A stretch of DNA of 63,972 bases, filler included, from Hyphochytrium catenoides (GCA_900088475.1; 10 parts of 10 records of this genome joined end to end with filler, not necessarily neighbours in it), one strand, 5' to 3'. Positions 20,703 to 36,972 are shown, counted from the first letter of the whole stretch. The notes: generated from the sequence alone by a model not told the origin. Program-made: numbers and translations.

Positions 20703-21282
20703 CGCTAGTGGCGTTAGTGCCAAGGTCACTGAGGATTGTGCCAGGAGGAGAAGAGGCGCTAGGGTTAGAGATGATGTTGGAGCGGAACTCTTTCACTTCT
20801 ACCTCTTTGGCCTTTCCTCCTTCTTCTTGGTGAGACTGCTGGGAGTGTGATGGGGCCTTGCCTCTCTCTCTCCTGCCCTCGGTGTCGTCATCCTCCACTG
20901 CTCCTCTCGTTCTGCCGCTCTCTTTAGATTCTTCGTCTGTCTCTTTCTTCGTCCTCTCGCAGCAATGCTCTTCTGCTTGCACAAGCTGTTGTTGCTCTTC
21001 CATATAACCCATCGTGTTGTCTGGTGCTGTACGAAAGGCTTCAACAGGAGGAAGAGGAGAAGAAGGAGCGAACGAGGATGGAGAGGAAGGGATCACTGTG
21101 GTTCCACCAGAAGAGATGGCAGTAGCAGCAGCGGCAGCTGGGTGCGGCACAGACAGAGGGATAAGAAGCTGGAGGTTGGATCCACACTCGTGGCAGAACT
21201 TCTGCTTCACTATCAGCAGCTTGACTCCGCAACTCGAGCAGAAGATGGAGGACATTGTTCGTTGACCTGGTACGTAGCTCAT
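20703..21282 (-). CDS. Protein with N-terminal zinc ribbon, 3'-truncated at linker
   Basis: MSSIFCSSCGVKLLIVKQKFCHECGSNL (CxxC...CxxC) followed by low-complexity Ser/Pro and Glu/Lys regions; the ORF runs into Ns. Confidence 0.6.
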
Positions 21283-22719
21283 TAACTCGTTTCTCTCTTT
21301 TTCTCTATCTCTCTTTCTCTCCCTTCTTCTTTCTCTATCTTTGGCTCTCTCTCCCTCCGCCTTCTCCTCCTACCGTCTCCCGATCCCTTCTTCCTTACGC
21401 CGTCGTCGTTTTGTTGCTTATCGTTCCTTACTTCTTATGCTGCAGTGTCTCCTGGTCCTGGTCTTAGACGACAAAAGATGCAGCAGCTACGACGATTTGC
21501 AGGTCAATCATGGACCAGCGACCGAAGAAGAAACCACTCTGAGGCACAAGTGGCATGGTTCGTCGACTCAGCAGACAAAAAAGTCTCTGGATCGCGGCGG
21601 GTCAAAGGCTTTCGACTAAACCTTTTCGCTCCTGTCTATCTTCTTCTTTATCTCTTCTTCCAGCTCTCAGGTTTTGCTTCTGCTTGTTGCCCGGCGACAG
21701 GGCGGTAGCGATCCCTACAGTTCCTTCCTTTTCCTCCCCCCTGCTAGTGGTCGAGAGAAGAAAGAGAGAGAGAGAAGAAAGAGAAGAGAGAGAGAAGAAA
21801 GAGGAGAGAGAGAAGAGAGAAGAGAGAGAAGAGAGAGAAGACAGCCAGCTGCGGCCAGTCTCTGCACTAGTAGTCAAGGTGTGACTATGGGGCGGAGAGA
21901 GGGAAAGATGTGGTGCATCTCCTCAACAACAAGAGACAGGAGAAAATGGAGAGAAGAAAGGCGCTCTGGGTGTTCAGTAGGAGGAGGGTGAAGGTGGAGG
22001 CAGCAGGAAGAAAAAGGCTGATGATAAAACCCTGATAAAACCTTGTCACCTTTCTGTTTCCTTCTCTTTTTTCCCTCTCTCTTTTTCTCTCCTCTTTCTC
22101 TCTCGTCTCTCTCTCTCTCTCTCTTCTCTTCTCTTTCTCTTTCTCTCGTCTTTCTCTCTCCTCTCTCTCTCTCTTTCTCTCCTCTTCCTCTTTCTCTCTC
22201 TCTTGCTCTCTCTTCTCTCTCTCTGCCTCTATCTTTCTCTCCTCTATCTCTGTCACCTGTTCCTTGTCTCTCTCTCCCTTACCCTCCTCTCTCTGGTCAC
22301 TCTCTCCTCTCTCTCTCTTTCTCTCTCTCCCCTTCCCTATCCCTCCTGTCTCTCTCTCTCTCTCTCACCCCTAGTCGTCGTTCTCAGTCTTCCATCTTCC
22401 ATCACACTTCTAGAAGTTCTAAACCACAAAAAGAAGATCTCTTCCTCACTCTCTGCTGTCTTCCCAATTAACCTTATGCGTTAGCGGCTCTGAATCATTT
22501 TGCCAAAAAGGTGTAGTTCCTAGAGTGCCGGGAGGACTCCGTGTGTGAAGTGTGAAGTGTGAAGGTTCAAAACTACAGTACTGAACACGAAACAAAGCTG
22601 CTAACGCCAAGTCACCGTAAACACTAAACACCACTTGCGCAATAGCCCTTATACTGGGCGTTAGCGGTCAAAAAACACAAGGAACTACTTGTACAAGTAC
22701 GGCACAGCAGGATGGTAGT

Positions 22720-25700
22720 ACTGTAGAGGATGATGGGAAGGTCAAACAGTAGTAGTAGTAGATCTATTATTATAGGGACCGCGGTCGATGGCCACCTCTT
22801 TCTTTCTCTTCCAGCTTGTTGTCCATCCACTTGCATGCTCGGACGGCGGTCCTGGACGGGAAGAGAGTGGTGTTCCTGGTTCCTGCTTGTCGAGGAGAAC
22901 TCCAACAACCACCGCTTACATTATTGTACGACAGCCAAAGACTTTGCACGGCTTCATATCGGCGCTACCGGTCCAGCAGCAGGAGGACAGGCAGGTATGG
23001 TCCTGCCGCTCGCATCATATCATCAGTAGAAGCTCTTAATAAAGAGGGAAACAATGGCCAAGGTAAGGCAAGGCCCTGGGCCAGTTGTCTTCTGGTGGAT
23101 ATTATTCCCCCTAGTTAACAATCCTATCCGCCCCAAAATCGTTACAGTGGCCAGCAGACAGCTAACGTGACAAAGAGCGCTGCGATTCGAGGAAGCAGGC
23201 TGGGAAAGAAGGGAGGAGGAGGAAGAACGCGGAAGGAGGAAGAAGACAAGGCCTATTAGAAACTAAGCGCTCTTTGTTCTCCTGCTCAAGACGGTTTGCA
23301 CGAGCTTCTTATCTGTAGATGAAGAAGAAGAGGTGACCTTGATGATGGCAACATGATGAAGCAGATAATATTGACGAGGGAAGGAACAGAAGAGAATAAT
23401 GGATGCGACAAGCTCATATATATCCATCTAGATACACATACATAAAAGATAAGGGGGAGGAGAAGAGAGAGGGAGAAAGAGAGAGAGAAAGAGAGAAAGA
23501 GAGAGAGAGAGAGAAAGAGAGAGAGTGAAAGAGAGAGAGGGAAAGAAAGGAGGAGAGAGAGAGAGAAGAGAGGGAGAAGAAAATAAGAAAGAGAGAGAGA
23601 AAAGGACCGAAAGCTAGAAGGAGGGCAAGGAGGTAGGAGAAGCCGGCGTCAAGCAACGTGAAGGACGACGAAGAGGGCGATGGAGAAGATAACGTGATAC
23701 CGAAGGACAAGAGTGATAATGATGGACTAAATGGGAACGATAGAGCTGAGCAAAAATCTATGATCAATTATAGTCTCTGAGTAAACCACGTTGATCCTGG
23801 CAAGTTTTGAACACCTCGTTTTTCTGGCAGTGAATAAAGGGCCTATTATTCAGGTATAGGAGCGCCAGCCGTGCAATGGCGATGGAGCCGCTGAGCTGAG
23901 GGAGACTTCCGTATCGATTATATGATGGTAAGAACTTATACTACTGAAAGAAGAGTGCCCCTGCTACCGCCACAAGCCTAGCGGAAAGGCTTCATTCCGT
24001 CTCGTCCCATCTGAGTCCATTCTTCCACCAGGATCAGCAGGTAACGAAGCATTGTAAGCCTTTAGACCTGCGCCGTTTCCGCGTGTCAATGCAGTCGGCC
24101 CGACGCCGAACTGGCCTACCCTTCATGCATTGGTCTAGTAGGGTATTACATGCGGGACTGCAGCTTCTGCTGGTGAATGGCTTGTCGCTAAAGCGAATGT
24201 TATCGAGCGTGTCAAAGAAACTGCACTTAAGCTGTGAGCAGTAAGGCCGCTGCTGAAGAGCTCGTCCACGGAGAGCAATTCCATCTTCTTCTTCTTGCTT
24301 GCCGCTGGTATGTTCCAAAAAAGAAGAAAGAGTACTGTCAAACCCATTAATTGCCAGGCTTTCGCCCGCCAGGAGATCAGCAGTAGCCTCAGCTGGCTGA
24401 GCTACGGCAGCCGCGATGGTGGGAGATGTAAAGAGGAGCAATCCAGTGCTAGCCACAGCGAATATTGCCCCAAACAAAAGCACAGCAGCAAACGAGATAT
24501 GACGAGCTCTGTACTGCATCCTTCCTTCTTCTGTTTTGCTGATCCTTATCTATGTACTGGCTGCCTTCACACGTATCGGGGCCGCTTGAATGGGAATGGT
24601 AGTGAACTCGTTGGATTGCGTTGCGGGTGACGGGCTGCTAGGAGCTTTCTTCGACTTCTTTCGCTGTTGGAAAAAGGTAGTATGATCATCGATGCAAGGG
24701 TAGCGGTAGGAGAAGAAGAGTCTGGCAGGCTGTAGAAGAGAAGAGGAGGTGAAGGCAGGGATCGAACTAAAGGGAGAAGGCGGAATGTCACGTTCCCTAC
24801 ACTGATCCTTGGGTTTGTTTCTTCTGGCTTTCTTGTACCATCAGAATCTCTAAGGAAGATGAAGTCCGGAGCAAGAAACTCCTGAGATGGCAGATGGAGG
24901 ATGGATCTCGTGAAGAGAAGGAGCAGTAGTCCTCCTTGAAAGAGCGACAGGAATACCGCTAAGAACGACAGCAACTCGCTGTCTCCTCCATCAACCGTCT
25001 TCCCCAAGAGGTACGTTTGCGAGCCTTGGAGGAAGGCGAGGCTCATGTTGAACTCCAGATGCAAGGAGAAGGATGGTGGTCGGCTGTACTCAGATGGCTT
25101 GAGAAGCGCGACCCCGTCTTGCACGAGTGACTGCATGTGGATGGAAGAAAAGGAGACTATCACCTAGGTAAACAAAGCGTGACGTGTCACCCTCTGTTCT
25201 TAGAATAGAAAAAGCTTCACTTGACGTGATATGTCACAGATGATACTGCCTGGATGATGGGAGAGATGGCTTCTGTTATAAATAAGCCAGGCTGACCGTA
25301 TCAGAAGAGCTACCTCAGTAACGTCTCTAAACCCATTACCTAACCCTTTGATCTCTTGGAAGACTTCTTATCCGTCACATCAGCACAGGCCACAGACAAA
25401 CCAACAAGGAGAAAAAAAGAGAAGCACCTTTCTCCACGTAGGTTCGGAGGAAACTGAGCCTAGTCTCGCCAAGATTGCTCGGTCTCGCATTGAAGACCAA
25501 ACGTCAACCTCGAAGAGAGCCTACCCTACCCCTTAACCAGCCTAGTTTTATTAGAGAGCCAGTATCATTTGGATGGGCCATAGGATATGTAGACAGACGC
25601 TCACGCAACCAGCTCGCAACTCAGAAAGCTCCACTCACTCAGTGTTATCACTAGTAGACATATCTTATTCCTGCCGTAGAACTACTGCTCATTGGAACCT

Positions 25701-26017
25701 TCTCACCCTCTTTTACTGGCTTCAGTTCGAAGGAAACCATTGACCGTGCTGACAGGGCGAAAGGCTAGCTTCCGGGGATATGAACTATGGCGTTGTAGAG
25801 AAAGCGAACGGGTTGGCTCTCGGCCTACCGACTCCGTTTACATTATTTTTTCCTCATCCGAACTCCCATTGCTAATTGTTAACATTCCTAAAGAACCAGA
25901 TGCTTAACGTTTCCCCCTCCCCCGACAACTGGACTTTAGCTCTTTCTCTCTCTCTCTCTTTCTCTCATACTTTCTCTCTCTCCTCTCTCTTTCTCTCTTT
26001 CTATCTCTCTCTCTCTC

Positions 26018-26051
<34 letters not shown>

Positions 26052-27230
26052 TCTCTTTCTCTCTCTCCCCTCTCTCTCTCTCCCCTCTCTCTGTCTCTCT
26101 CTCTCTGCGTTGATGCCAGCAGATCGCTTTGATGCCAAGGGCTTTTTGTTCAAGAACAGAAAAAACTTCTCCGTCGCTCTACGTCTGTATCAGTCCTGAA
26201 AAAGTGTATCAAGGGCCCAAGGTCCCAACAACTGTCAACCAACCTGGAAAAAGGAATAAGGGTAGCTCTGCTCTGTGGAGCCTTCTGAATCGTCCAACGC
26301 CTATCTCCTCCTGACAGAAAACGACCTTCTTTCCCTCCTCTTATTAACTTCTGTCGTTTGACAGTGCGCCTCTTCTGTTGTTGGTTAAGCCTCTTCTGCT
26401 GTTTCCTGCCACACCGAACTAAACTGAGGCACTAGGTCACCACTTAGTCATATTTCTCAGTCTGAGACCCATGCCTAGCGTCCGCGCAAGCCAGGAAGAG
26501 TCCACCCAGTCTGGTGTGAAAAAAAAACATTTCCTGGGTAGCACACATCGTTGACCTCTGTGTACTCTTTACCTCGCTACGAAGAGGTAGCGTCCTGGGC
26601 TAAGTAAACGGCGTGAGACAGTAATAGAAGGCACCCCAATAGTGTAAAACAGTAGTCGTTCTTTCTAGTGCCTAGGAAAGAGAGAAAGTTTGAGTATGTC
26701 AGCTTCTTCTAGATCTCCACTCGAGGAGGTGATAGATATAATAAGGTAGGACAGCTAAGATACAGGCGATCGCAAAGGAGAGAGAATTGAGAATAATTTT
26801 ATTAGGAGGATCACTTTCACGGTGTTGATTTATCCCTTCCCTGCAGTAGTCAGGCAGCATAGGCATTTCTTCTTGTCCTTTTCTCTCTCTCTCTCTCTTT
26901 TTCTCTCTCTTTCCCTTTTTCTCTCTTTCTCTTTTTCTCCCTGTCTATCTTTCTTTCTATCTATCTCTTTCTCTCTCTCTGTCTTTCTCTCTGTCTCTCT
27001 CTGTCTCTCCTGTCTCTCTCTCTCTTTCTGTATCTCTCTGTCTCTCTCTCTCTTTCTCTCTCTGTCTCTGTCTCTTTCTGCCTCTGATCTCTCTCTCTCT
27101 CACTCTCTCTCTTTCTCCACGCGAAGAACTACTTTTTTCTACTATTCAAAAGCGTCCATCTCAGAACGGTGGACAGAAGAATACTAGGAGTAGTGTACCC
27201 GATGCGCGAGTTGTTGTCTCTCTCCATCCT
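22720..27230. repeat. Tandem segmental duplication, copy A (~4.5 kb)
   Basis: Collinear matches to ~27860-32600, e.g. GGCCAGCAGACAGCTAA (~23150/~28294), CAGATGCAAGGAGAAGGATGGTGGTCGGCTGTACTCAGATGGCTTGAGAAGCGCGACCCCG (~25056/~30156), and TGATGCCAGCAGATCGCTTTGATGCCAAGGGC (~26111/~31241). Confidence 0.92.
24034..24519 (-). CDS. Small secreted cysteine-rich precursor 1 (signal peptide, acidic pro-region, RALQ, 8-Cys cationic domain)
   Basis: Single 161-aa ORF with a hydrophobic N-terminus and acidic QEEED before RGRALQ. Putative mature part is C-x4-C-x20-C-x3-C-x6-C-x11-C-x13-C-x3-C, ending on Cys. A paralog lies at 29128-29592. Confidence 0.88.
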   Translation of the reverse strand: MQYRARHISFAAVLLFGAIFAVASTGLLLFTSPTIAAAVAQPAEATADLLAGESLAINGFDSTLSSFLEHTSGKQEEEDGIALRGRALQQRPYCSQLKCSFFDTLDNIRFSDKPFTSRSCSPACNTLLDQCMKGRPVRRRADCIDTRKRRRSKGLQCFVTC

Positions 27231-27470
27231 TGGTCAGTAGTCTTGTTCATTTCTAGTTTCTATCCCCAGTCATGCCTAGTAAACCATCCGCGGCAGCTTC
27301 CTTCCTCATCTAGGAACATCACCTTTAGTCACTCCATCAGGCAGGCAGTCCTATTCCTCGCCACTTTTGGTAATAATAAGAGATGAGAATGAGGGCGTAG
27401 AACTACCTGGTTCTTTTGGCCCGTTAACCCACCCACAGATTGCAGGTGCTTTTGCTGCTGGAAAAGTAGC

Positions 27471-27474
<4 letters not shown>

Positions 27475-27516
<42 letters not shown>

Positions 27517-27848
27517 AAGAAAAGAGAGAGAGGGGAGGAGAGAGAGAGAGAGAGAGAGCGCGCGCGCGAGAGAGAGAGAAAGAGAGAGACAGAGAGAGAA
27601 GGAGAGAGAGAGAGTGAGTGAGAGAGAGACAAAGAGAGAGGGAGGGGGAGAGACAAAGAGAGAGAGAGAGACAGAGAGGGAGAGAGAGAGAGAGACAGAG
27701 AAAGTGAGAGAGGGAGGGGGGAAGAGAGAGAGAGAGAGAGAAGGAGAGAGAGAGAGTGAGAGAGAGAGAGACAGAGAGAGAAGGAGGGGAGAGAGAGAGA
27801 GAGAGAGACAGAGAAAAAAAGAGAGAGAAAAAGAGAGAGAGAGAGAAA
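27475..27848. repeat. Long (GA)n-rich microsatellite at the junction of the two duplicated units
   Basis: About 370 bp of near-continuous purine GA repeats; representative of many such tracts in the window. Confidence 0.9.
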
Positions 27849-27859
27849 AGAACTGCGGA

Positions 27860-30800
27860 GGATGGATCATGACGGGAACGTCAAACAGTAGTACGAGTAG
27901 TAGAGCCATCGTACGGATCGCTGGCTCTATCCACCACCTCTTTCTCTCCCAGGGTGTTCTTCACCCTTCTCGAATCTCAGCTAGGTCCTGCGACTACGAT
28001 GGAAGAGGATAGTGTCCCTGGAGGAGGAGGGACTCCAAGCGCTTATGATACGGACAAAGCATAGACCTGATGTCATCGACAACAACGTTATTATCGTGGA
28101 ACTACACGTCACGCTGATGACGGCGATGCAAATGTGAGCAACGACCGCTTAAGATGAGGTCTTACCGCCTCATACCATCAATAGATGCTCTTGATAGGGA
28201 GAGGGGGAATATCAAGTTAAGGCAAGCTACTGGGCTCTGTTGTCGTTTCGGTGGAATCCTTGACTTCCTCTCTTCTCCTGATATCGTCACAGGGGCCAGC
28301 AGACAGCTAAGATACCTCTGATGAAAGCTGACCACCGTGGTTGAGAAGAAAGAAGAAAACGGAAGGAAGAAGGAAGACAAGTAATGCATCAAACCCAAGC
28401 GCTCTATGTTCTTTCTTCTTCATGCGGCCGCGTGCTCAAGAGGATTGTTTTCACAAGCTGCTGGTAGTGAAGATGAAGAGGTGAAGATGATGATGTCATC
28501 ATCAAGAAGCAAATATGAAAGGGAGGGAACGAACCTCAAGAGAAAGGAGGCGACGTACTCATATATACTTATTAGTGTAATAAGATTAAAGGAGAAGGAG
28601 GGATAGTAAGAGACAGAAGGAACAAGAGGGAGATTGAATTGAGAGGAGAGAGACAGAATAAAGAAAGTGAGAGAGAACAAGTTCATAAAAGGAGGAGGAG
28701 GGAGAGAAAAAAGGAGGAGGAGGGAGAGAAAGAGACAGAAGGAACAAGAGGGAGACTGAACGAAGAGCAGGGCGACGGAGATAAATGCGTTAAAAAAGGA
28801 CAAGATCAGTTAGTAGCATGATGGAAGAGCCGCGGAAACCTTTATGATTTCCATGAGTGATCCATCATCTTTGTACCGGCAGTTCTAATCCAGTCATGTT
28901 ATCCTTCTTCCGGCAGCCGGGGACTATGAAGGGCCTACTATTCATGAGGAACAAAGATGTGAACAGTGGCAGTGCACGTGGCAATGAGAGGCGTTTAGCA
29001 GCCTCAGAGAGTTCATAGTATTAAAAAGTTCTTATGGGAAACTGCCCTATAGGAGCTCCCAAAAGCTTAGCAAGTAGGCTTTTCTCAGTTTGCCTCTAAA
29101 TAGTCAGCTCTTTGAGTCTTAGACGACTCAACAGTGAATATAGCATTGTAGCGTGACGGAGGCCCGCCGTCCCTGCTTGTTGAGGCATTCGGTTTGGCGT
29201 GTCCTACTAGCACCGCTCTCGCACCCGTTCCGTATCAATGGATGGCACCTATTGCTGCAGGTAGAGGCAGGTACGCTGCGATATTGCAGTCCCCCGACGG
29301 AAAAATCGCTGCACTTAACCTGGGTGCACAGAGGCAGTCGCTGAAGAGCTCGTACATGGAAGGCACTTCCGTTTTCTTCTTCTTGCTTGCCGCTGGTGGA
29401 ACTATGTTCCAAAGAAGAAGAAAGGCCATTGTCAAGTTCATTAATTGCCAGGATATCGCCTGCCAGGAGATCACCAGTAACCTCAGCTGGCTGCGCTACG
29501 GCAATGGTGGGAGATGTAAAGAGGAGCAATCCAGTGCTAGCCACAGCGATTAGTGCCCCAAACAAAGCCACAGCAGTCGTTCTGTACTGCATCCTTCCTT
29601 CTTCTGTTTTGCTGATCCTTATNNNNNNNNNNNNNNNNNNNNNNNNNNNNNNNNNNNNNNNNNNNNNNNNNNNNNNNNNTGGATTGCGTTGCGGGTGACA
29701 GGCTGCTAGGACTTCTCTTCGACTTCTTTCGCTGTCGGAAAATTGCAGTATGATCATCGATGCAAGGGCAGCGAGGAGAAGAAGAGTCTAGAACAGGCTG
29801 TAGAAGAGAAGAGAAGGAGATGAAGAAGGGGATCGAACTAAAGGGAGAAAGCGGAATGTCACTACCCCTACGCTGGTCCTTAGGTTTCTTTCTTTGGCTT
29901 TCGTGTGCCATCAGAATAGCTACGGAAGGAAGATGAAGACAGGAGGAAGAACTCCTGATGAGATGGCAGATGGAGGATGGACCTCGTGAAGAGCAGGAGC
30001 CGTAGTTCTCCTTGAAAGAGAGACACAGGAGAGAAATGAATACGGCTGTCCGCTGCTGAAGAAGAACGACAGCAATTCGCTTTCTCCTCCATCCACCGTC
30101 TTCCACAAAAGATACGTTTGCGAGCCTTGAACAAAGGCGAGGCTCAGGTTGAACTCAGATGCAAGGAGAAGGATGGTGGTCGGCTGTACTCAGATGGCTT
30201 GAGAAGCGCGACCCCGTCTTGCACAAGTGACTGGATGGAAGAAGGAGACTCTCACTTAGGTAACAAAGCGTGACGTGTCGCCCTCTTTCTTTCAATAGAA
30301 AAAGCTCCAGTTGACGTGATACGTCACAGGTGATACTGTCTGGATGATGCGAGAGATGGTCTCGGTTCTATGCCAGGCTGACCTTACCAGAAGAGCTACT
30401 CTCAGTAAGGTCTTTGAACCCTTTGATCTCTTGGAAGACTTCTTATCCGTCACATCAGCACAGCCACAGAGACAAACCAACAAGCAAAAAAAAGAGAGAA
30501 GCATCTTTCTTCATGTGGGCACGTGGATTCGGAGGGAACTGAGCCTAGTCTCGCCAAGAAAGCTCGGGCTCGCAGTAAGGACCAAACGCCCCTCGAAGAG
30601 AGCCTTACGTACCCGTAACCAGGCTATTAGAGAGCCAGTATCATTTGGATGGGCCATAGGATGTGCAGACAGACGCCCATGCCACCAGCTCGCAACTCAG
30701 AAAGCTCCACTCACTCAGTGTTATCACTAGTAGACATAATATCTTATTCCTGCCGTAGAACTACTTCTCATTGGAACCTTCTCACCCTCTTTTTACTGGC

Positions 30801-32600
30801 CACAGATCGAAGGAAACCATTGACCGTGCTGACAGGGCGAAGGGCCCACTTCAGGGAAATATGACCTATGGCGTTGTTGAGAAAGCGAACGGGTTGGCTC
30901 TCGGCCTACCGATCCGTTTATAAAATTTTTTCCTCATCCGAACTCCCATTGCTAACATTCCTAAAGGTCCAGAATTCTCAACGTTTTTTTCCACCCCGAG
31001 AACTGAACTTTAGCCCTTCGACTATAAATAGTTTCGCTCTCCTCTCTCTCGCTCTCGCTCTCTCTCTCTCTCTCACAAACTAACTCTCTCGCTCTCTGTC
31101 TCTTTCTCTCTTTCTCTCTCCCTCTCTCTCTCTCCCTCTCTCTCTCTCCTCTCTCTCTCTCTCCCCTCNNNNNNNNNNNNNNNNNNNNNNNNNNNNNNNN
31201 NNNNNNNNNNNNNNNNCTCTCTGCCTCTCTCTCTCTGCTTTGATGCCAGCAGATCGCTTTGATGCCAAGGGCTTTTTGTTCAAGAACAGAAAAAACTTCT
31301 CCGTCGCTCTACGTCTGGATCAGTCCTGAAAAAGTGTATCGAGGGCCCAAGGTCCCAACAACTGTCAACCAAACTGGAAAAAGGAATACGGTAGAACTCT
31401 GTTCTGTGGAGCCTTCTCAATGGGCCAACGCCTATCTCCTCCTGACAGGAAACGACCCTCTTTCTGTCATCTTAACTTCTGTCCTTTGACAATAATGCGC
31501 GTGGCACTAAAATTATAACCCTCTGTTGTTTCCTGCCACACCGAACTAAACTGAGGCACTAGGTCACCACTTTTAGTCAGTCATATTTTTCTCAGTATGA
31601 GACCCTATGCCCGGCGCTCCGCCCAAGCCAGGACAGTCCACCCAGTCTGGTGCGAAAAAAACGGTGATGACATGGTTGCTGGTGGTTCACCTCTTCCTCC
31701 TCCTTCTTCTCCGCTCATCATTTATTACTGAGGAAATCAACTATGATGCTTCTTTTACTGAGGATGAGCAGGGAGCAGGTTCGAGCTGATGAGATGATGG
31801 AAGAGCCTACGGCTTCTTATTGTAGCTTTTCTTCTCTTCTACTTCCTCTTCTTCTTCTTCACTTTCTTCTTCTTCTAGAATTAGTCTGTTAGTAGTGATA
31901 GTAAGGCTTAGTAGTTTTTGCTAGTTAAACAGCTTCAAAAAAAAATATTTCCTGGGTGGCACACATCCTTGACCTCTGTGTACTCTTTGGCTCGCTACGA
32001 AGAAGTAGTTCTACCGTCCTGGGCCACAGGGACACAGTAGAACGCACGCCACTATTGTAAAACAGTAGTCGTGTTAGTGCCTAGGAAAGAGAGAAGGTTT
32101 TGACAGCGCCAGCTTTCTTCTGGATCGCCACTCGTGGTTGGCCGCTGGGTGCGTATGATAAGAGGAGAAAGGTTCTCCCTGGTTGGTTCAGGGAGACCTG
32201 TGTAAGTTAGAGGAGGTGGTAGTTCTATAATAAGGTAGGGCAGCCAAGATACAAGCAACCGCAAACGAGAGAATGATAACATTTAGGGAGGATCACTTTC
32301 ATGGCGTTGAAAGTAGGTATCCCTTTCCACAGGGTCTTCCTCTCTCCCTCCCTCTCTTTTTCTCTCTCCCTCTTTCTCTCTCCCTCTCTTTCCCTCCCCC
32401 TTTCTCTCCTCTCTTTCTCTCTCTGTCTTTCTCTCTCTCCCTGTCTCTCTGTCTCTCTCTTTTTCTCTCTCTCTCTCTCTCTCTCTCGTTCTCTCTCCTC
32501 TCTCCGCGGAGAACCAACTACTATAATCAAAATTGTCCATCTGATAACGGTGGACCGAACAGGAGAGAGACAACTGAACCTTGAACCTTCAGTTCGCACC
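27860..32600. repeat. Tandem segmental duplication, copy B
   Basis: Collinear with 22720-27230; see copy A. Confidence 0.92.
29128..29592 (-). CDS. Small secreted cysteine-rich precursor 2 (paralog of 24034-24519)
   Basis: 154 aa: MQYRTTAVALFGALIAVASTGLLLFTSPTIAVAQPAE...SGKQEEENGSAFHVRALQ, then C-x4-C-x17-C-x3-C-x7-C-x11-C-x13-C-x3-C and stop. Confidence 0.88.
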   Translation of the reverse strand: MQYRTTAVALFGALIAVASTGLLLFTSPTIAVAQPAEVTGDLLAGDILAINELDNGLSSSLEHSSTSGKQEEENGSAFHVRALQRLPLCTQVKCSDFSVGGLQYRSVPASTCSNRCHPLIRNGCESGASRTRQTECLNKQGRRASVTLQCYIHC

Positions 32601-33020: not shown

Positions 33021-33731
33021 CTAGTTCATATTGAAGAAGCTGCGGAGAAAGCGCTGCTGCTGCTTGGCATTGTTATTGTTCTTTCCTCCTCTTTTCTTCC
33101 CCTTGTTGTTCTTCTTCCCGCGTTTCTTTCCTCGTCTCTTCCCTCCTTTCTTCCCTCCTTTCTTTCGGAAGTTTCTTCTCTTCCCATTGCGTTTCTTCCC
33201 CTTTCTTCTCCTTTTCTGGCGTCTCTTCCTCGCCGCCTGGGTGGCAGGCTGCGTCGTAGCTGCTGCTGGAGCTTCTGTGGCTGCTGCTTCTGTCACTGCA
33301 GTCGATGTAGCGGGCGCCACCTCAGTCGAGGCAGCGGCCGTAGGAGCCTCAGTAGAAGCAGCGGCGACATTAGCTGCTGTCTCTCCTGCTGCTCCGTCTT
33401 CTTGGAGAGAAGAGGCAACTGCTGTCTCTTCTTCTTCTTCTCCTTCTCCAGTGGCAGCAGCGCCGGTGAGAGAGGCCGTGGCGCCTTGTTCCTCTTCCTC
33501 TGCTCCTCCATCTTCCCCGAGGAGAGATCTGGCGGCAGAAACATCGTCATCTTGTCCATCGTCATTGATATCTAGTGAGGCCTCTGGGCCGTCATTGTCT
33601 AGGGTTTGTAGCACTCTTCCTTGTGAGGAGAGAGACACAGCCGGTGCATTGGCTTGAGCTTCAATGGAGAGAGAAGAGAGAGAGAGAGCGGCGATAAACG
33701 CCAAGAGAGAGGCAGTCGTGGCGAGCTTCAT
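33021..33731 (-). CDS. Secreted low-complexity protein: signal peptide, RVLQ, acidic block, Ala/Thr block, Lys/Arg/Gly block, C-terminal RFLR
   Basis: Single 236-aa ORF from MKLATTASLLAFIAALSLSSLSIEAQA (signal-peptide-like), with ordered compositional blocks and no stops. Confidence 0.82.
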   Translation of the reverse strand: MKLATTASLLAFIAALSLSSLSIEAQANAPAVSLSSQGRVLQTLDNDGPEASLDINDDGQDDDVSAARSLLGEDGGAEEEEQGATASLTGAAATGEGEEEEETAVASSLQEDGAAGETAANVAAASTEAPTAAASTEVAPATSTAVTEAAATEAPAAATTQPATQAARKRRQKRRRKGKKRNGKRRNFRKKGGKKGGKRRGKKRGKKNNKGKKRGGKNNNNAKQQQRFLRSFFNMN

Positions 33732-34920
33732 GCTCTGTCTTTGTTTCCTTTCTCCGTCTCCTTTTTTACTCTTGCTTTCTTTTTCTCGTTGCGTGAGAGA
33801 GTTTATCACGTCGCTGCTGTGCGTCCTAATAAGAGAGAGAGAGAGAGAAAGGTTCTTTCTTGTTCTCTCTTTGTTCCCTTAGCGGTTGGCTGGTAGTTTA
33901 GGCTTGTATTCCAAAGGGAAACTTGAGAAGTGAGAAGTGAGGGCAGTGGTGAAGGTTCAGTGGCGGCTGCCATTGTGAGGAGAGAGAGAGGGAAGAGAGA
34001 GAGAGAGGAAAAGTGCAGAGAGAGAGGATTACTCTTCTATCTTTGCAGCTCTTCTCCCCCTTCTCGACGGCTGTTGAAGCTCTTGACAGCCTCTAGAGCT
34101 TAAGAAAGTGTTGCAGTCGGGTGCTCTCTCTGTCAACAATGTCTGGGAGAGAGAATATCTTTGTCTTTCCCGCTTCGAAGCTTCTTTTCCCTTCGCACTG
34201 TACGCGCAAAATCGAGAGGGAGAGAAGGGAAGAAGGGGAAGACCGAGAGAGAGAGAGAGAGGGAGAGTACGAAAGCAAAAGGAGATGAGAGCCAGTTTTT
34301 TGCCGCTGTCTGGGTCTTTAGAGGCGCTGTGCGTGGCACAGTCTGGGAAAAAGGAGCGAGAGAGAGAAGAGCCTGCCGATGATGCAGCGTCTCTTTCCTC
34401 TTCTTCCTACCGTCACATTGGAGGTGAGATATATCCTTATTAATGGACTCCTGTATCTCTTTCTCATTCTGTCTCTCTCTCTTACTGTCATTCTACCTCG
34501 CTCTTTGTCTTTCTCCTCACCAATTCGTCTCTTTTTTCTCTGCTCGTAGCCTCCTCTCTCTCTGTCCTTCTCCTCTCTCTCTCTGTCCTTCTCCTCTCTC
34601 TCTCTCTGTCCTTCTCCTCTCTCGTTTATCAACCCGGTTCTGTCGCTCTAGCAATTTCTCTGTCTCTATGGTCATTTTGGTAGCAGTTTTGATGTTTTGC
34701 TCTCTCTCTCTCTCTCTCTCTCTGTTTCTCTTTTTCTTTCTTTTTCTCTCCTCTTTCTCTCTTTCTCTCTCTCTCTCTCTCTTCTCCCTTGCTCACCGCT
34801 CACTCTTTCTCATACTTCGTGATTCCATCTTCATTTCTCTGTCCGCGCGTCTCGTCGGCACCACATCGTTCTGATGTCTTCTAATTACATCTTAATCTTC
34901 TCGCTCTCTTTCTCTCTCTT

Positions 34921-35419: not shown

Positions 35420-36317
35420 TTCTTACCTCCTCCAGTCGCATGTGCATCTTTAACAAGACCTCCTCAGCGTTTCTGTCTTTAATGTATGTCTTTCCCTACT
35501 GTCTTTCTGGCTGCTCTCTCCTTTTCTCTCACCCTCTCCCTTTGTCTCTCCCTCTCCCTCTGTTGCCTTTTCTTTCTTTCAAGAGGGTATCTCCTCTCTC
35601 TCTCTNNNNNNNNNNNNNNNNNNNNNNNNNNNNNNNNNNNNNNNNNNNNNNNNNNNNNNNNNNNNNCTCTCTCTCTCCAGCAGTCCATTTCTGAGGAGGA
35701 GAGTCCCAGACATAGTTCTAGTGATACGGCCGGCCCATCAGCGATGTCTCCTACTTATGATGATTGTGTCTCTCTCATGAGCGTCTCGTCTTTCTTCTCT
35801 TCTGGTGCTGTCGATGTCTAATCATCTGCTGCTGGTGCATTTGTTGGTCTCTCTAGGTGCTGTCGATGTCTAATCATCTGCTGCTGGTGCATTTGTTGGT
35901 CTCTCTCTTTCTCTCTCTCGCTCTCTCTCTCTTCTCTCTCTCTCTCCCCTCCTCTCTCTTCGCGTCCCCTGGTCGTCTGATCATCTGCTGGTGCATTTCG
36001 GCAAAGATCCAGAGGCTGAAACAGACACCTTTTGGTGATTCTCCTTCTCACCTGATCATATGCCGCTAATAGTGATTCTTCTAATTGTAGCTTGTAAGTA
36101 TTCACTCGATAGTATTCCGCTTGGCCCCTATTTTGTTGGCTGTGCTGATAGTTACTGCTTACCTTATCTTATTCCCCCCCGAGACTTAGAACTATGATCA
36201 TCTGGGTAATAAGGATCTGATCGTATTCCGCATGGCGGGTTGCATGTGGACACTTAGGGGGTTGGACATTATTGGAAACGACATTGAGGTCATGTCTGGG
36301 CCATCTGGGAGGGGAGG

Positions 36318-36379
<62 letters not shown>

Positions 36380-36972
36380 ACAAGAGAGAGAGAGAGAAAG
36401 AGAAACAAGTGGGGAGAAACAGAGAGAGAGAGAGGAAGAGACAGAACAGGAAAGGGAAACAAGTGGGGAGAAACAGAGAGAGAGAGAGGAAGAGACAGAA
36501 CAGGAAAGGGAGAGGTGGGAGAAACAGGCGAGAGAGAGTGAGAGGAACAGAGAGAGGAAAAGGGAGAGAGAGAGAGAGAGAGAGAGAGGTGGCAGGACAG
36601 GAGAGAGAGAGAGAGAGGAATAGATTGAAAGAGATAGAGCGAGTATGAGAAAGAGAGAAAGAGGGAGGAGAGAGAGAGATGAGGTGAGAGAAACAGGAGA
36701 GAGACAGAGAGAAAGACCGGTGCACCCATAACACTGGCCTAACTTGTAAAGATGATGACGACAGCACCAGAAGAAGAGACAAAGTTGTGGTGCTGAGATG
36801 GGATCTTCCATGTTGTTATAAACATAATCCGAAGGACGAAGTCAGAGAGAGAGAGAGAGAGAGAAAGGGGACGAAGAGAGAGAGAAAGAGAGACAGCAGG
36901 GAAAGACATACATTTAAGGCAGAAACGCCTGCTGGTCTTGTTAAAGATGCAGACGCTGATTGAAGGTAAGAA
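35420..36972. repeat. Imperfect inverted repeat pair (~85 bp arms at ~35420-35505 and ~36890-36972)
   Basis: TGCATCTTTAACAAGACC..GCGTTTCTG.CTT.AATGTATGTCTTTCCCT.CTGTCT at ~35442 recurs as its reverse complement at ~36890-36951. A second inverted match, CTTCTGGTGCTGTCG, lies at ~35799 and ~36759-36773. Confidence 0.8.

Follow-up and report, generated by a model that had tools for sequence, protein, structure and literature searches.

Introduction

Mammalian alpha-defensin precursors join an anionic propiece to a cationic cysteine peptide, and their genes lie in tandem clusters that are prone to conversion; several of the known eight-cysteine patterns require an adjacent cysteine pair (CC) or the word C-x-C; and conotoxin genes carry introns between the parts of the precursor. 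What defines a conotoxin superfamily is a signal sequence that is highly conserved (PMC4494072). In this paper, we set beside these systems a pair of genes, paralogs A (24034-24519) and B (29128-29592), both on the minus strand of a 63,972-nucleotide stretch of DNA from Hyphochytrium catenoides (GCA_900088475.1; records joined end to end with filler, hereafter the window), which look, from their sequence, like genes whose products are secreted prepro-proteins that end in a cationic eight-cysteine domain. All positions are those of the window, and the analysis, with every count given for “the piece,” refers to the 16.3 kb between 20703 and 37014.

We have tried to focus on one question about this pair: why should the front of the two products be so alike and the back so different? 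Such a pattern is usually read as diversifying selection, and it is a check of synonymous and flank divergence that settles the question. We argue that the conserved front and divergent back stem from recent copying of the front half between the two genes, and that rapid change in the back half is not their cause. In other words, we take the locus, with a probability that we would put at roughly 0.6, to be a tandem duplication whose history is a mosaic (conversion, crossing-over or cassette import) of intronless genes for secreted eight-cysteine prepro-proteins.

Two genes with a secretory layout

Paralog A is a single intact open reading frame (ORF) of 161 amino acids plus a stop codon, and paralog B is one of 154 amino acids plus a stop codon; each opens at its first in-frame ATG, and the two products are 50% identical (BLASTP, E 3e-44). 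A stop codon lies 10 codons upstream of the ATG of A, and the equivalent place in B falls within a gap of 57 N (29623-29679) that ends 31 nt upstream of B’s ATG. Both products have a basic start followed by strong hydrophobicity (Kyte-Doolittle, mean of 2.3-2.4 in a 19-residue window). A-x-A sites occur in A after residues 24 and 40 (38-A-V-A-40), the second of them common to both paralogs, where A-V-A is followed by Q-P-A-E. If A is cut after this second A-V-A, its signal-like part comprises 40 amino acids (24400-24519), and that of B comprises 33 (29494-29592). Next comes an acidic pro-region, of 49 amino acids in A (24253-24399), where it has R-A-L-Q at its C-terminal end, and of 51 in B (29341-29493), and then the cationic eight-cysteine domain, of 72 amino acids in A (24037-24252) and 70 in B (29131-29340), all of these parts being on the minus strand.

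The charges are as lopsided as an acidic propeptide and a cationic disulfide-rich domain, which the original prediction had proposed, would lead one to expect: the pro-region has a net charge of -6 (A) or -7 (B) and an isoelectric point (pI) of 4.2, and the cysteine domain has +10 (A) or +7 (B) and a pI of 9.8 or 9.3. The prepro part of both proteins is free of cysteine, all eight cysteines falling in the C-terminal domain with the spacing (A/B) C-x4-C-x20/17-C-x3-C-x6/7-C-x11-C-x13-C-x3-C-stop, which on counting is exactly the spacing first described, and the signal and pro-region words then quoted as common to two single-ORF paralogs are all present in the alignment. With a signal-like start, a length of 154-161 amino acids, eight cysteines and no domain known to Pfam, the pair falls within the operational class of small secreted cysteine-rich proteins.

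What route might such a protein take? Going by the layout, the precursor would enter the endoplasmic reticulum co-translationally by its hydrophobic N-terminal signal, and the acidic pro-region (~50 amino acids) would balance the basic domain while the precursor folds and is transported, before being removed, probably near the shared R-A-L-Q. The eight cysteines would presumably form four disulfides in the secretory pathway, and the released domain, basic, disulfide-stabilised and ~70 amino acids long, may then act extracellularly by binding a surface, a polyanion or a partner.

A mosaic repeat unit

When the piece is compared with itself, a tandem duplication appears whose period is ~5.1 kb. 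The sequence runs without an N gap from 24034 to 29622, and this contiguous, N-free stretch between the copies supports the tandem arrangement; haplotype mis-assembly as a source of the duplication is ruled out, since N-free sequence joins copy A without interruption to the 5' leader of copy B.

Three parts of different age make the repeat unit a mosaic: a young 5' tract, 2.8 kb long or more (~0.13-0.17 substitutions per site), an old and saturated island of ~560 bp, and a distal 3' flank of intermediate age. The young (homogenised) tract, which spans 24221-27048 in copy A and pairs with 29309-32504 in copy B, takes in upstream non-coding DNA, the 5' leader, the signal, the pro-region and Cys1-Cys2; in copy B, it also contains the gap of 57 N, a gap of 48 N (31169-31216) and ~275 bp of extra sequence (31662-31936). 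The island, at 23664-24220 in copy A with its counterpart at 28805-29308 in copy B, holds Cys3-Cys8 and ~370 bp of proximal 3' flank, and at the nucleotide level, it cannot be aligned between the copies. Beyond it, the distal 3' flank of copy A (22730-23663) is collinear and alignable with its partner in copy B (27869-28804) at an offset of 5139. All of these tracts are given for the minus strand. At their outer ends, the similar tracts border on (CT)n/(GA)n arrays (26882-27117/32340-32504 and 23460-23600/28687-28743), which may perhaps be linked to recombination.

The young tracts pair at 81-82% identity with gaps included (blastn), and the figure for the upstream non-coding DNA is 82% over 2041 columns. 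When only the 1881 aligned bases 5' of the ATG are counted, the non-coding identity is 88% (p = 0.12, Jukes-Cantor [JC] distance 0.13), so that the high upstream similarity reported in the original prediction holds. Identity remains at 80-90% as far as Cys2, the signal, pro-region, R-A-L-Q and Cys1 included, and then, within a few codons, drops; the 60-nt windows of the island show 35-57%, which is the background level, and blastn yields no high-scoring segment pair there, even at word size 7. The maximum chi-square statistic puts the breakpoint at 24220 in copy A (83.4, against a permutation maximum of 18.7, with 0 of 1000 permutations reaching it). That is, the break sits 14 codons past R-A-L-Q, after Cys2, so that it cuts through the putative mature domain and coincides with no domain boundary. 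Past the stop codon, the first ~370 bp can be aligned no better than the codons of the cysteine domain itself.

The codons tell the same story on their synonymous sites. In the 92 codons 5' of the break, the proportions of differing synonymous and nonsynonymous sites (pS and pN) are 0.155 and 0.132, and the corresponding rates (dS and dN) are 0.17 and 0.15, for a dN/dS ratio (omega) of 0.84. In the 59 codons 3' of it, pS is 0.72 (bootstrap 0.54-0.91, saturated) and pN is 0.48 (0.38-0.57), with a nominal dS of 2.3, a dN of 0.76 and an omega of ~0.3. The step at synonymous sites alone is significant at p 1.5e-8 (Fisher). Because dS and dN in the prepro region are about equal to each other and to the divergence of the upstream non-coding DNA, we regard the prepro region as young and not as held by constraint; and because selection on a protein cannot raise the divergence of synonymous sites or of flanks, the identity step reflects history.

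The distal 3' flank needed more care. Its identity is 62% over 1008 columns; with simple repeats excluded, p = 0.27 for 703 aligned positions, and its JC distance of ~0.34 is probably too low owing to alignment optimisation. The E-values of blastn with +1/-1 scoring are not to be trusted in this repeat-rich DNA (a reversed-sequence control reached E 2e-48 inside simple repeats); when the non-repeat part was retested against 200 block shuffles, the raw score was 94, against a maximum of 19.

Within the stretch that cannot be aligned, both frames are open, both end at the same aligned residue, and all six of the island’s cysteines are in register. These features, together with a pN that lies below pS in 99.7% of bootstraps 3' of the break, mean that the genes still look functional, and the pair is probably a real lineage-restricted tandem family of secreted eight-cysteine proteins.

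How might such a mosaic have come about? A segment of ~4.3-4.6 kb with one intronless gene would have been duplicated in tandem, giving the period of ~5.1 kb. The two cysteine domains, saturated as they are at synonymous sites, would be old paralogues; the promoter, leader, prepro region and Cys1-Cys2 would owe their likeness to recent non-allelic gene conversion or unequal crossing-over, and the distal 3' flank would have been homogenised earlier (~0.3). Alternatively, a divergent cysteine-domain cassette may have been imported from another member of the family. Selection that keeps the two domains different could maintain the island.

Homology of the cysteine domains and the search for relatives

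Are the two cysteine domains related at all, or do they only resemble each other in composition? Taken alone, they are 33% identical, and their Smith-Waterman score of 110 stands so far beyond that of shuffled sequences (27 +/- 5, maximum 56, reached by 0 of 5000; z = 16) that true homology, and not mere compositional likeness, must account for it. Two copies, and no third, are found in the piece (tblastn; match between the cysteine domains E 1.7e-9).

Outside the piece, we find nothing to which they could be attached. No Pfam family matches A or B at E <= 1, defensin and toxin models included. A word-indexed protein search with A gave no match, and an exhaustive hidden Markov model search with an A + B profile against 1.84 billion protein cluster representatives gave 0 at E <= 0.001. 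The PDB, searched by sequence, returned only chance matches (E ~0.9). Metagenome contigs scanned by peptide patterns yielded no match, nor did exact 30-mers when looked for in collections of metagenomes and of prokaryote genomes, and the exact products of A and B are not on record in a gene-position index.

Modelling fares little better. AlphaFold2 (AF2), given two-sequence alignments, produced poor models of the two cysteine domains, with a predicted local distance difference test (pLDDT) of 62.8 and 52.8. Both models, obtained independently and at this low confidence, have a strand at 11-16, one helix that starts from C-x3-C, and two further strands, the last of which bears the closing C-x3-C. 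Foldseek against the PDB gave 0 matches for one model and, for the other, only matches at E > 0.7 and TM < 0.4. The eight-cysteine scaffold, which the original prediction had failed to recognise, is indeed without a relative in Pfam, the PDB, Foldseek or the 1.84 billion representatives; it matches no known family and has no confident fold.

Weighing the alternatives

Several points weigh against the mosaic history of secreted prepro-protein genes that we prefer. The confidence of AF2 is poor (pLDDT 63 and 53), and the hydrophobic stretch is long (~30 amino acids), so that it is possibly a signal anchor instead of a cleaved signal. Since the R-A-L-Q motif lies in the young tract, its presence in both A and B carries no information on processing. 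Two sequences with saturated dS cannot separate a two-sided conversion from a foreign cassette, and they leave room for past episodes of positive selection. Finally, the similarity of the distal 3' flank could reflect constraint and not youth.

The alternative that survives best, unlikely as we consider it, is cassette exchange within a larger family, by which a shared 5' module of promoter and prepro region would have recombined, time and again, onto old, divergent cysteine cassettes, with one of the two islands imported from a distant paralogue. An island that is more diverged than the DNA on either side of it, and a breakpoint as sharp as this one, are what such an exchange would leave behind, and the (CT)n/(GA)n arrays at the tract ends might favour recombination. 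Against it, we have only two copies in the 16.3-kb piece and no further member in any collection searched; moreover, two conversion events of different age fit the data equally well.

Somewhat less probable again is the explanation with which the original prediction began, namely, that positive selection has diversified the mature domain and purifying selection has kept the prepro region, after the fashion of conotoxins or defensins. There is something to be said for it: 69% of the residues 3' of the break differ between A and B, and the cysteine scaffold is nonetheless retained; the non-cysteine dN of the mature domain, at 0.88, exceeds the divergence of both the distal 3' flank (JC ~0.34) and the 5' tract (0.13); and the DNA is more similar on both sides of the island. 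Yet the same step is taken by synonymous sites (pS 0.155 to 0.72), and it falls after Cys2, within the mature domain. The ratios run opposite to what this explanation predicts, for omega is ~0.85 in the prepro region and 0.3-0.4 in the island (0.32-0.42 with saturated dS), and the claim that the mature domain is the faster-diversifying part is not supported. The original prediction had itself named a mature-region divergence no greater than that of the neighbouring flank as telling against it, and this is what the proximal 3' flank shows: its ~370 bp are equally diverged, and protein selection cannot cause that. The distal part, on the other hand, is similar again at p ~0.27 and speaks for the prediction, by leaving the cysteine domain within an island of old sequence. 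What is left standing of the interpretation is the pair of putative secreted prepro-proteins with an unmatched scaffold; what lacks support is the diversifying mature domain, and a recombination mosaic takes its place.

One may go further than the mosaic history and imagine a modular system, in which conversion spreads a promoter-plus-prepro “launch” module over a larger family and selection keeps the cysteine cassettes distinct. We hold this to be an unlikely extension, a little less probable even than diversifying selection.

The weakest explanation, that A and B are chance ORFs or decaying pseudogenes within a duplicated intergenic segment, draws on the lack of any homologue or recorded gene product, on the many long spurious ORFs that simple repeats yield in this genome and on a near-neutral prepro omega of ~0.85, but it is very improbable given frames that stay open to the same aligned end with cysteines at fixed spacing despite saturation, the excess of pS over pN in 99.7% of bootstraps and a coherent secretory layout of hydrophobic start, acidic middle and basic, cysteine-rich end.

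The surrounding sequence

Extensive (CT)n/(GA)n arrays, sparse genes and scaffolding with N gaps make the piece look like eukaryotic DNA. As a guess from general features (ORFs on one strand, polypyrimidine-AG sites upstream of the ATG, long and repeat-rich intergenic DNA), the source might be a coccidian, a dinoflagellate or perkinsid, a euglenozoan or a stramenopile; the genome of the coccidian Sarcocystis neurona, for example, has intergenic regions of 8.5 kb and long simple repeats (PMC4337577). The piece has three internal N gaps, and its four credible ORFs share the minus strand. Runs of 25 nt or more that consist purely of purines or purely of pyrimidines make up 10.9% of the piece, and none are expected in shuffles; the (CT)n/(GA)n arrays reach ~400 bp (e.g., 22075-22366, 27473-27846 and 36320-36716). 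Strand skew alternates in blocks that track the 5.1-kb repeat unit. At 35796-35906 and 36320-36587, there are, respectively, a 52-bp unit repeated 2.1 times at 96% identity and a higher-order array with a 54-bp period within a (GA)n tract. The ~275 bp at 31662-31936, upstream of B and absent from A, have A-runs at their borders and showed neither terminal inverted repeats nor a coding signal. In scans with Rfam and for tRNAs, the only matches were chance ones that lay below threshold and fell in simple repeats.

Next to copy B, on the minus strand, lies a third ORF for a putative secreted protein (33024-33731, or to 33809 if read from an upstream GTG). It has a signal-like start, R-V-L-Q 12 amino acids past the predicted cleavage, a 140-amino-acid acidic middle rich in A, E and T (pI 4.05) and a 69-amino-acid tail rich in K, R and G (36 K+R, pI 12). 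It has no Pfam domain, and its exact product, from either start, is not on record; a word-indexed search with the 262-amino-acid product found no homologue, a weak blank since low-complexity words saturated the candidate list. Kinship between A and this neighbour is rejected, there being no BLASTP alignment between them. R-x-L-Q follows the signal in all three secreted ORFs, which may be chance (rough expectation 0.04). A, B and this third gene also have a polypyrimidine tract and then AG ~110-130 nt upstream of the ATG (~24650-24790, 29740-29870 and 33830-34030, minus strand); judged by sequence, these sites could be cis-splice acceptors of 5' untranslated region introns or trans-splice acceptors.

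The remaining ORF (20703-21282, minus strand) is Zn-ribbon-like, with an N-terminal C-x2-C...C-x2-C and a C-terminal end cut by the edge of the piece. Its Pfam Zn-ribbon matches are weak (E 0.002-0.02, all under the curated cut-offs), and a word-indexed protein search found no homologue. Pfam scans of the four ORFs and of 10 further ORFs of the piece gave nothing except these weak matches.

Implications and comparison with known systems

What does this pair contribute? It adds an unrecorded eight-cysteine secreted domain without a relative among 1.84 billion protein clusters, and it serves as a worked example of a trap, in which a conversion breakpoint inside an ORF can, all by itself, mimic the pattern of a conserved prepro region and a hypervariable mature domain. 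If the source organism is a parasite or a symbiont, the two proteins are reasonable candidates for secreted interaction proteins; and if the modular system described above were true, recombination would be keeping a repertoire of secreted ligands or antimicrobials on an undescribed four-disulfide fold.

Conotoxin precursors come nearest in layout, and alpha-defensin precursors follow. Like them, A and B appear to carry a signal, a pro-region and a C-terminal cysteine framework in one precursor (read here from sequence), and in both systems, the signal region of paralogues is far more similar than the cysteine-rich part, with diversity arising from gene duplication. The likeness stops there. 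A and B have no relation to conotoxins in sequence or fold (no Pfam match and none among the 1.84 billion representatives), their genes are single uninterrupted ORFs, and their domain of ~70 amino acids is larger than most conotoxins. More to the point, omega in the mature part of A and B is below 1 (0.32-0.42), not above it, the proximal 3' flank lacks conservation, and the contrast between front and back extends to synonymous and flanking sites, with the break inside the mature domain.

The alpha-defensins of mammals share with A and B an acidic pro-region that roughly balances a cationic, disulfide-rich C-terminal peptide, but they have six cysteines in ~30 amino acids, against eight in ~70, and there is no Pfam or PDB match to join the two; the piece, moreover, being (CT)n-rich and devoid of known genes, is clearly not mammalian. 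More generally, the frameworks of the defensins (alpha, beta, CS-alpha-beta and big) do not fit a protein with eight cysteines and no C-x-C, whose fold models are of low confidence. The CS-alpha-beta peptides come nearest in shape, for the AF2 models put a C-x3-C at the start of a single helix and two cysteines on the last strand; that strand, however, bears C-x3-C and not the defining C-x-C, and the two models, at a pLDDT of 63 and 53, bring up no relative in Foldseek. Among the known eight-cysteine Pfam domains (hydrophobin, CFEM, nsLTP, WAP, hevein and others), none matches at E <= 1, and A and B have neither CC nor C-x-C.

In secretory proteins processed at R-x-L (PEXEL and TEXEL in apicomplexans, RXL in diatoms), the motif stands at a set distance past the signal peptide, and a lineage-specific protease cuts after its L. 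The R-A-L-Q of A and B lies ~46-51 amino acids past the predicted signal cleavage; only A fits the pattern R-x-L-x-E/Q/D, and the motif falls in the young tract, where its conservation is uninformative. Also comparable are the small cysteine-rich proteins, candidate effectors, that fungi, oomycetes and other eukaryotic microbes secrete: A and B have fewer than 300 amino acids and an even number of cysteines (5% of residues), and they are without homologues, in tandem and set in a gene-sparse, repeat-rich region. That class is descriptive and not a family by homology, and the long acidic pro-region is atypical of it. By homology, A and B belong to none of the systems compared here. In short, A and B make up a family that is new, of a kind that is familiar.

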